Shown here: positions 59,855 to 60,061 of the stretch, piece after piece
Numbering within the stretch: the first letter of the stretch is position 1
Layout: the number at the start of each line of letters is the position of its first letter
DNA from: Amphiscolops sp. MND2022
Taxonomy: Eukaryota
Direction of reading: 5' to 3'
DNA: 64,000 nt
Assembly: GCA_964187785.1 (NCBI GenBank)
Contig: OZ076418.1
Location: 56,482,001 to 56,546,000, forward strand
Notes under the pieces: generated by a model
Seen by the model: the letters and a program-made list of their open reading frames with translations, nothing else
The model's database searches: none
What the model was told of the DNA's origin: nothing
Position numbers and translations under genes: made by a program

Positions 59855-60061
59855 TCATTTGTAGCAAGGTTTACAACAACGATCCATGCACATGAAGTAT
59901 TCTACATATGTTTCGAGCCAACATTCGTCAGCACATGCCAAATAACACTTTCCGCATCTGTAATAAGCAGGGTCATCTCTTTTTTCAACTGCTTGTCGAT
60001 CAATCGCAGCTACCAAGAGCTGTGTAACAAAGAGTAGGACGCAAAAGTATTTTCCCATCAT
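59855..60061 (-). CDS. Secreted cysteine-rich peptide precursor (68 aa)
   Basis: MMGKYFCVLLFVTQLLVAA (signal-like), IDRQAVEKR (propeptide with dibasic site), then the 40-aa mature DDPAYYRCGKCYLACADECWLETYVEYFMCMDRCCKPCYK with 8 Cys. Intact ATG-to-stop reading frame. Confidence 0.75.
   Translation of the reverse strand: MMGKYFCVLLFVTQLLVAAIDRQAVEKRDDPAYYRCGKCYLACADECWLETYVEYFMCMDRCCKPCYK

Follow-up and report, generated by a model that had tools for sequence, protein, structure and literature searches.

The window analysed here, the whole stretch of 64,000 nucleotides (nt) taken from contig OZ076418.1, contains a short open reading frame (ORF) at positions 59855–60061 that reads as a candidate precursor of a small secreted peptide with eight cysteines. 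Upstream of it on the same strand stands an exon of a transporter-type gene, and downstream a decayed retrotransposon. A preliminary description of the ORF had set out a signal-like peptide, a short propeptide ending in KR and a tail of 40 amino acids (aa) with a defined cysteine spacing, leaving the strand unstated. The anatomy is right and the translation places it on the minus strand, with the following parts.

59855..60061, minus: candidate coding sequence, 68 codons plus a TGA stop (59855–59857), from the translation and the ORF list.
60005..60061, minus: signal-peptide-like residues 1–19, with a basic n-region, a 15-residue hydrophobic core and V-A-A before the predicted cleavage, from the sequence and its hydrophobicity.
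59978..60004, minus: nine-residue hydrophilic spacer or propeptide, residues 20–28, ending in dibasic K-R, from the sequence.
59858..59977, minus: predicted mature 40-aa peptide with eight cysteines, residues 29–68, from the sequence and an AlphaFold2 (AF2) model.

Reverse-complement translation from 60061 to 59858 gives a 68-aa product followed by the stop, while the plus strand has an internal stop across 59855–60061, the interval being open on the minus strand only. The signal-like character of residues 1–19 is borne out by the basic Lys4, by the mean Kyte-Doolittle hydrophobicity of 2.27 over the 15-residue core and by the V-A-A that ends the stretch, and the N-terminus passes a rule-based signal test (our own rule, not SignalP). 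The propeptide is also as described, with residues 20–28 ending in K-R. This dibasic site, at which the spacer would be cleaved, sits exactly between the signal and the cysteine domain.

The cysteines of the predicted mature peptide occupy positions 8, 11, 15, 19, 30, 34, 35, and 38, and the translation thus confirms the spacing C-x2-C-x3-C-x3-C-x10-C-x3-CC-x2-C given earlier. Six of the eight belong to two C-x3-C-x3-C triplets separated by 10 residues (Cys11, Cys15, Cys19 and Cys30, Cys34, Cys38), which we refer to as the six-cysteine (6C) ladder core, and the two extra ones are Cys8 and Cys35. The last cysteine stands two residues before the stop. Both cysteine codons are used, and simple repeats do not make up the ORF. 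The predicted mature peptide is acidic, with an isoelectric point of 4.66 and a net charge of −2.3, and has six tyrosines.

Such a density of cysteines is rare in the surrounding DNA. Among the 782 open segments of at least 40 codons within the window, three have at least eight cysteines in 40 residues; one of the other two lies within a tandem-repeat array and the second also reads as repetitive. The ORF is the only one in the window that passes the signal-peptide rule with at least six cysteines, and when about 120 kb of the same genome are translated in six frames, the 6C core appears a single time. As a null model we used a third-order Markov chain trained on the non-transposon DNA of the window, and scanned the simulated sequence with the rule-based signal test. 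In 200 Mb of simulated DNA, a signal-like start combined with at least six cysteines is found in 13 ORFs, and with at least eight cysteines in none.

AF2, run on the single 40-aa sequence, predicts helices at residues 9–18 and 24–39 in a helix-loop-helix arrangement, with a mean predicted local distance difference test score (pLDDT) of 75.4 and a predicted template-modelling score (pTM) of 0.52; four of the five models of the peptide score 68–75. As far as a prediction goes, this helical hairpin agrees with the earlier remark that C-x3-C spacing suits disulfide-stapled helices. The paired positions of the ladder (11 and 38, 15 and 34, 19 and 30) each add up to 49, the constant sum that rungs linking two antiparallel helices should give, and it is from this helical periodicity alone that the disulfide pairing of the predicted peptide would follow. 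The best-shaped neighbours of the model in a Foldseek search of the PDB are nigellin-1.1 (PDB 2NB2; template-modelling score 0.58, root-mean-square deviation 2.0, 33 columns, E = 5, not significant) and the Ara h 1 leader peptide. A viral fold library gave no structural match to the peptide model.

Taken together, these features make the ORF a credible candidate for an orphan peptide gene or a gene relic. We tentatively favour, at a little short of an even chance, a lineage-restricted single-exon orphan gene, or its very recent relic, for a 68-aa secreted prepropeptide with a four-disulfide helical hairpin. On this reading, residues 1–19 would act as the secretory signal and be cleaved off behind V-A-A, and a dibasic-specific convertase would then cut after K27-R28 to release the 40-aa peptide. 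The peptide would fold into two antiparallel helices held by a three-rung ladder (Cys19–Cys30, Cys15–Cys34, and Cys11–Cys38), the two remaining cysteines supplying a fourth bridge, Cys8–Cys35, and the outcome would be a compact, protease-resistant helical hairpin. Such a hairpin might bind an extracellular protein target (a receptor, a channel or an enzyme) in the manner of helical-hairpin toxins, inhibitors and pheromones, instead of disrupting membranes. A role of this kind seems the most likely one in view of the acidity and the many tyrosines of the peptide; the former, as read from the predicted sequence, argues against a classical cationic membrane-active antimicrobial and would fit a ligand, a blocker or a pheromone-like molecule better. 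What the sequence itself establishes is the ORF with its cysteine geometry and its rarity under the null model; secretion, cleavage, disulfide pairing, fold and function are inferred from it.

The preliminary description could not assign the cysteine framework to any known family. The framework can, however, be placed in a known structural class, as judged from the spacing, since its core is the published "6C alpha-hairpinin" motif of plants, C-x3-C-x3-C-x4-20-C-x3-C-x3-C (PMC11591084), which is a likeness of motif and not of ancestry. The triplets at 11, 15, 19 and 30, 34, 38 match this motif with a loop of 10 residues, the commonest loop length among the predicted members (558 of 1057), and rare eight-cysteine variants are also predicted among the alpha-hairpinins (PMC11591084). 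The curation rules of that study allow at most one or two extra cysteines outside the core and no "CC" beside the core (PMC11591084). One extra cysteine of the candidate lies two residues before the core and the other inside it, forming a CC, a case on which these rules are silent.

Besides the identical six-cysteine core and the modal loop, the candidate resembles the plant 6C alpha-hairpinins in its predicted helix-loop-helix shape and in the signal-like peptide on its precursor. It differs from them in its two extra cysteines and its acidity, shares no sequence with them beyond the cysteines, and comes from a seemingly metazoan genome, so that any likeness would be convergent. Membership of the alpha-hairpinin family by descent is therefore not supported by the sequence, given that there is no sequence similarity, that two cysteines are added (one of them making the CC), that the peptide is acidic and that the host is probably an animal. 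The corresponding positive claim, that an animal lineage evolved independently of plants a secreted four-disulfide helical hairpin consisting of the 6C ladder and an extra bridge, and hence a cysteine scaffold new among animal toxins, defence peptides or pheromones and encoded by an unannotated single-exon orphan gene, goes further than the orphan-gene reading, and we consider it doubtful.

Animal helical hairpins of a simpler kind are known. The scorpion kappa-hefutoxins and OmTx1-3 and the cone-snail peptides flf14a-c and vil14a consist of two antiparallel helices joined by C-x3-C ... C-x3-C disulfides, these CS-alpha/alpha toxins having 22–27 residues and two disulfides (PMC7191063). Like the candidate, for which secretion is a prediction, they are secreted animal helical hairpins, and they bind a protein target, namely potassium channels. 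The four-cysteine motif of these potassium-channel toxins (kappa-KTx and the cone-snail peptides) is contained in the candidate, but the latter has 40 aa and eight cysteines, and no sequence similarity was found.

A further parallel is found in the N-terminal half of the snakin/GASA motif, which begins C-x3-C-x3-C-x8-C-x3-C-x2-CC-x2-C in a domain of 12 cysteines (PMC9856046). Both this half and the candidate have two C-x3-C runs followed by CC-x2-C, whereas the snakin/GASA domain is longer, has 12 cysteines to the eight of the candidate and comes from plants; Pfam GASA is not matched at E up to 10. Other small secreted two-helix peptides, with three disulfides, are Ole e 6, Phytophthora PcF and Aplysia attractin, the last being an acidic animal pheromone. 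None of the three appears among the Pfam, PDB-sequence or Foldseek matches, and no relationship to the candidate is shown. Two further classes were considered and rejected. For the twin C-x3-C small Tim/CHCH proteins, the candidate has a signal-like N-terminus and no Pfam match at E up to 10, the nearest structural match touching this class being a complex III subunit at E = 3 (Foldseek). For the cnidarian minicollagen domain, with the contiguous motif C-x3-C-x3-C-x3-C-x3-CC, the cysteine runs of the candidate are 10 residues apart and its first spacing is x2.

The searches for relatives covered protein, profile and nucleotide collections. In Pfam at E up to 10, the peptide ORF gives only a sub-threshold match to DUF5348 (E 0.055, below the cut-off of that family), which we regard as noise, as are the PDB sequence matches to AVR-Pii, KnChR, and HsTX1 (E 0.4–1.7). 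A word-indexed search of 5.8 billion protein clusters returned no relative of the 68-aa product or of the 136-aa segment obtained by reading the frame from stop to stop, and exact-product look-ups of the 68-aa form and of a 115-aa form from an upstream start found none on record. In a phmmer search of 1.84 billion representatives the single match, P0001 (E 2.6e-4), is spurious, being a 1051-aa repeat protein (Sel1/TPR-type by eye) of which a 20-residue stretch aligns with the spacer region of the query. A query of 68 aa requires about 37 bits to reach significance against a collection of that size, which weakens these negative results. The case that the preliminary description had named as telling against it, a match to a fragment of a larger known protein, did not arise in Pfam, the PDB or the protein collections.

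At the nucleotide level, a back-translated scan of the Joint Genome Institute (JGI) metagenomes gave no relative, and the paralogue check by tblastn proposed earlier was run against the window and five loci of the same genome (L001–L005; about 120 kb in all) and gave no paralogue. A degenerate DNA pattern for the exact eight-cysteine spacing matched solely (TGY)n microsatellites, none with a core of at most 10 cysteines, among the matches listed. The ENA contig that matches the locus belongs to a metagenome assembly whose annotation comes from a gene caller of the prokaryote type, which left the peptide ORF uncalled; paralogues could for this reason be missing from the protein collections as well, a second weakness of the negative results.

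Several results weigh against the orphan-gene reading, and most of them favour the alternative that the ORF arose by chance, untranslated intronic or intergenic DNA happening to spell what resembles a signal peptide and, behind it, a tail rich in cysteines. None of the collections searched, the approximately 120 kb of the same genome included, yielded a homologue, orthologue or paralogue, and there is hence no evidence of conservation or selection. The ORF has a GC content of 40.7% and its flanks 33–38%; a value at only the 79th percentile of local 204-nt windows makes no clear compositional contrast. The 68 codons upstream of the start are also open, which would fit a longer product or chance, and in the non-element part of the window chance alone should produce about three open segments as long as the resulting stop-to-stop frame (at least 136 codons). 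The frame is intact, as the preliminary description had emphasized, with 68 codons open; however, with some three such segments expected, this is no evidence on its own. A Foldseek search of the PDB gave no significant match (E of 3 or more). The antisense control (40 aa, offset by 3 nt) is also predicted to be helical, with a pLDDT of 65.4, a pTM of 0.32 and the other models at 46–55, so that the fold prediction favours the sense peptide only modestly.

The same caution applies to the statistics, for which the null is a Markov chain and not real genomic DNA. A factorised estimate gives about 1.9 signal-like ORFs with at least eight cysteines per Gb, roughly 1e-4 per window, and these chance rates have to be set against the size of the scan that yielded the ORF; a whole-genome scan would return some one to two such ORFs per Gb by chance, the ladder aside. 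The ladder speaks against chance. Two separated C-x3-C-x3-C triplets, mirrored across the 10-residue loop, arise in 0.14% of random placements of eight cysteines in 40 residues (p = 0.0014), a statistic that was defined only after the sequence had been seen, and the joint expectation for signal, eight cysteines and ladder falls to about 0.003 per Gb. The absence of any match with at least eight cysteines from the simulated DNA, the exact placement of the dibasic site and the stop closely following the last cysteine are further points that a chance ORF would have to accommodate. A pure chance origin is therefore unlikely, though we regard it as the most serious competitor of the orphan-gene reading.

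The remaining alternatives depend on the surroundings of the ORF, of which the main features are the following.

43735..58355, minus: decayed Ty3/Gypsy-type long terminal repeat (LTR) retrotransposon of 14.6 kb with zf-CCHC and integrase domains, not part of the peptide gene, from repeats and domains.
58648..59038, no strand: run of 391 N that separates the retrotransposon from the ORF, from the sequence.
59393..59438, minus: first two canonical AATAAA signals, 417 and 457 nt past the stop, a consensus match only.
60062..60265, minus: in-frame open extension of 68 codons with an alternative ATG at 60200–60202 and an acceptor-like tttttcAG ending at 60213, from the ORF list and the sequence.
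60108..60113, minus: TATA-like hexamer 52 nt upstream of the ATG, a consensus match only and not evidence of function.
63687..63904, minus: host exon of an MFS/sugar-transporter-type gene, which the ORF follows at a distance of 3.6 kb, flanked by a canonical AG acceptor and a GTAAGT donor, from a profile match and the splice sites.

The ORF lies 1.5 kb outside the retrotransposon, in DNA that is unique in the window save for a 114-bp repeat fragment at 60495–60608. The preliminary description had spoken of surrounding decayed DNA, and a decayed element is indeed nearby, but the direct flanks are unique non-coding DNA and not a decayed gene copy. The LTRs of the element (43735–44470 and 57612–58355, 744 bp) are 94% identical. 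Compared to the ORFs of another copy in the same genome (L004), its zinc-knuckle (gag-like) ORF has three in-frame stops, the protease ORF is broken into four pieces in three frames, the reverse transcriptase-RNaseH ORF is split between two frames with two stops, the integrase ORF between two frames with one stop, and a further 232-aa ORF between two frames; L004 also has, beyond its integrase, a pair of downstream ORFs that lack a counterpart in the window copy. In the ENA assembly ERZ25074608, other large contigs with about 100x coverage are rich in this family, so the retrotransposon-bearing DNA is host DNA. The top 120 matches of an integrase search are all ENA proteins, and the two that were looked up both come from ERZ25074608.

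The proximity of this element bears on the possibility that the ORF is the relic of a once-functional cysteine-rich peptide gene, now unexpressed and perhaps silenced by the nearby 14.6-kb retrotransposon but not yet disabled. A relic would reconcile the designed-looking cysteine geometry with the lack of a detectable family, and the decayed element, on the same strand, comes to within 1.5 kb of the ORF on its downstream side, the first canonical poly(A) signal standing as far as 417 nt past the stop. On the other hand, nothing in the frame, the start context or the eight cysteines is damaged, and an active and a silent gene are indistinguishable on the present evidence. We consider a silenced relic of this kind improbable compared with the orphan-gene reading, which itself allows for a very recent relic.

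The upstream extension raises instead the possibility of a longer product. The stop-to-stop open frame has 136 codons, and a start at ATG 60202 would yield 115 aa; alternatively, the acceptor ending at 60213 could join an upstream exon to the frame. In either case the hydrophobic stretch of residues 1–19 would act as a membrane anchor or an internal segment, and the cysteine tail would belong to a membrane protein as a small domain. The extension contains a second hydrophobic stretch, its opening over 68 codons has a local P of about 0.024, and the ORF lies downstream of the transporter exon, which is on the same strand and has good splice sites. Against this, the upstream ATG is set in a poor context, with C at −3 and T at +4, compared with A at −3 and G at +4 for the second ATG of the 68-aa form, the 136-aa segment has no match in Pfam (Sugar_tr and MFS included) or among database proteins, and no other transporter-like piece is found on the minus strand in 59–64 kb or 21.6–43.7 kb. 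A longer product thus seems slightly less probable even than a silenced relic. Between −63 and the start of the 68-aa form no upstream ATG occurs. The gene signals around the ORF as a whole are permissive and not compelling.

An intracellular metal-binding mini-protein, with zinc or an iron-sulphur cluster coordinated by the C-x2-C pairs (Cys8/Cys11 and Cys35/Cys38) and the inner cysteines in place of disulfides, is very improbable. Although C-x2-C ... C-x2-C at the ends of a domain is a common zinc-ribbon spacing, the N-terminus resembles a secretory signal, no zinc-finger or Fe-S family is matched at E up to 10, and a disulfide ladder accounts better for the i, i+4, i+8 periodicity along the two predicted helices.

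Should the ORF be expressed, the small set of disulfide-stapled helical hairpins, which consists of the plant alpha-hairpinins and the scorpion and cone-snail helical toxins, would gain an eight-cysteine member, and the case would be one of a plant-type 6C ladder arising in an apparent animal genome. Compact disulfide scaffolds are of structural interest, and short orphan genes routinely escape annotation. If the ORF is not expressed, it would serve as a warning that a convincing-looking "secreted cysteine-rich peptide" can appear by chance about once per gigabase.

A second assembly of the same genome carries the peptide ORF letter for letter (L005; ENA ERZ25074608, contig ctg184083_95x_l of 269 kb, to which exact matches of two window ORFs lead). 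Over 4.7 kb the window differs from this contig by a single 6-nt indel at 60727, where TATTGT is present in the contig; the window is another assembly or haplotype of the same genome, and the local heterozygosity is very low. A neighbouring ORF, sought as a marker of a second haplotype, is carried by one contig only. With one 6-nt indel in 4.7 kb, the variation is too scant to test constraint on the peptide.

The transporter exon matches Pfam Sugar_tr at positions 169–213 of 452 with an E of about 6e-4 to 1e-3, below the curated cut-off, and gives weak PDB matches to XylE and SV2A/B (E 0.06–0.9). Either the transporter gene has very long introns or its exon stands isolated. On the plus strand, an ORF with a SET domain at 34446–34946 resembles KMT5B/SUV420H (E 2e-12), and this KMT5B-like ORF and the SV2-like exon together hint, on sequence resemblance, at an animal host. 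The CpG observed/expected ratio is 0.85, and searches gave no rRNA, tRNA or Rfam matches and no telomere-type repeats.

The SET-domain ORF belongs to a cluster of intronless ORFs at 34446–37613 on the plus strand, together with two ORFs of 253 and 187 aa that have no match; the cluster may consist of retrocopies or represent a mobile element that belongs to no described class. One further ORF within 1–43.7 kb has a weak C2H2 zinc-finger match. In the first part of the window, 1–9000, there is a strong and sustained plus-strand excess of G over C, with a GC skew of 0.25–0.5 over most of 4–9 kb and no tandem repeat or recognisable gene to explain it. A repeat of about 0.7–1 kb occurs in three copies (15124–16129, 19198–19980, and 24843–25892) that are 79–85% identical and 4–5.6 kb apart, with related pieces at 17021–18047 and 25888–27139, forming a segmentally repeated block.

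An open segment at 33509–33907 on the plus strand has 10 cysteines in 40 residues, which stem from a 15/30-nt tandem repeat at 33819–33898 encoding Cys/Gly/Ser/Pro-rich repeats with no Pfam match; the segment could be a repeat artefact or part of a cysteine-rich structural protein. Downstream of the peptide ORF, a 135-bp direct duplication at 59343–59518 has a small palindrome in each copy and a third partial copy at 60430–60451. Some 0.9 kb upstream of the ORF, a long inverted repeat at 60945–61085 has 39-nt arms that are 85% complementary. It matches no Rfam family, and its fold is far more stable than that of shuffled sequence (−55.7 kcal/mol, z = −6.1); it could be a locus resembling a miniature inverted-repeat transposable element or one producing a hairpin RNA.
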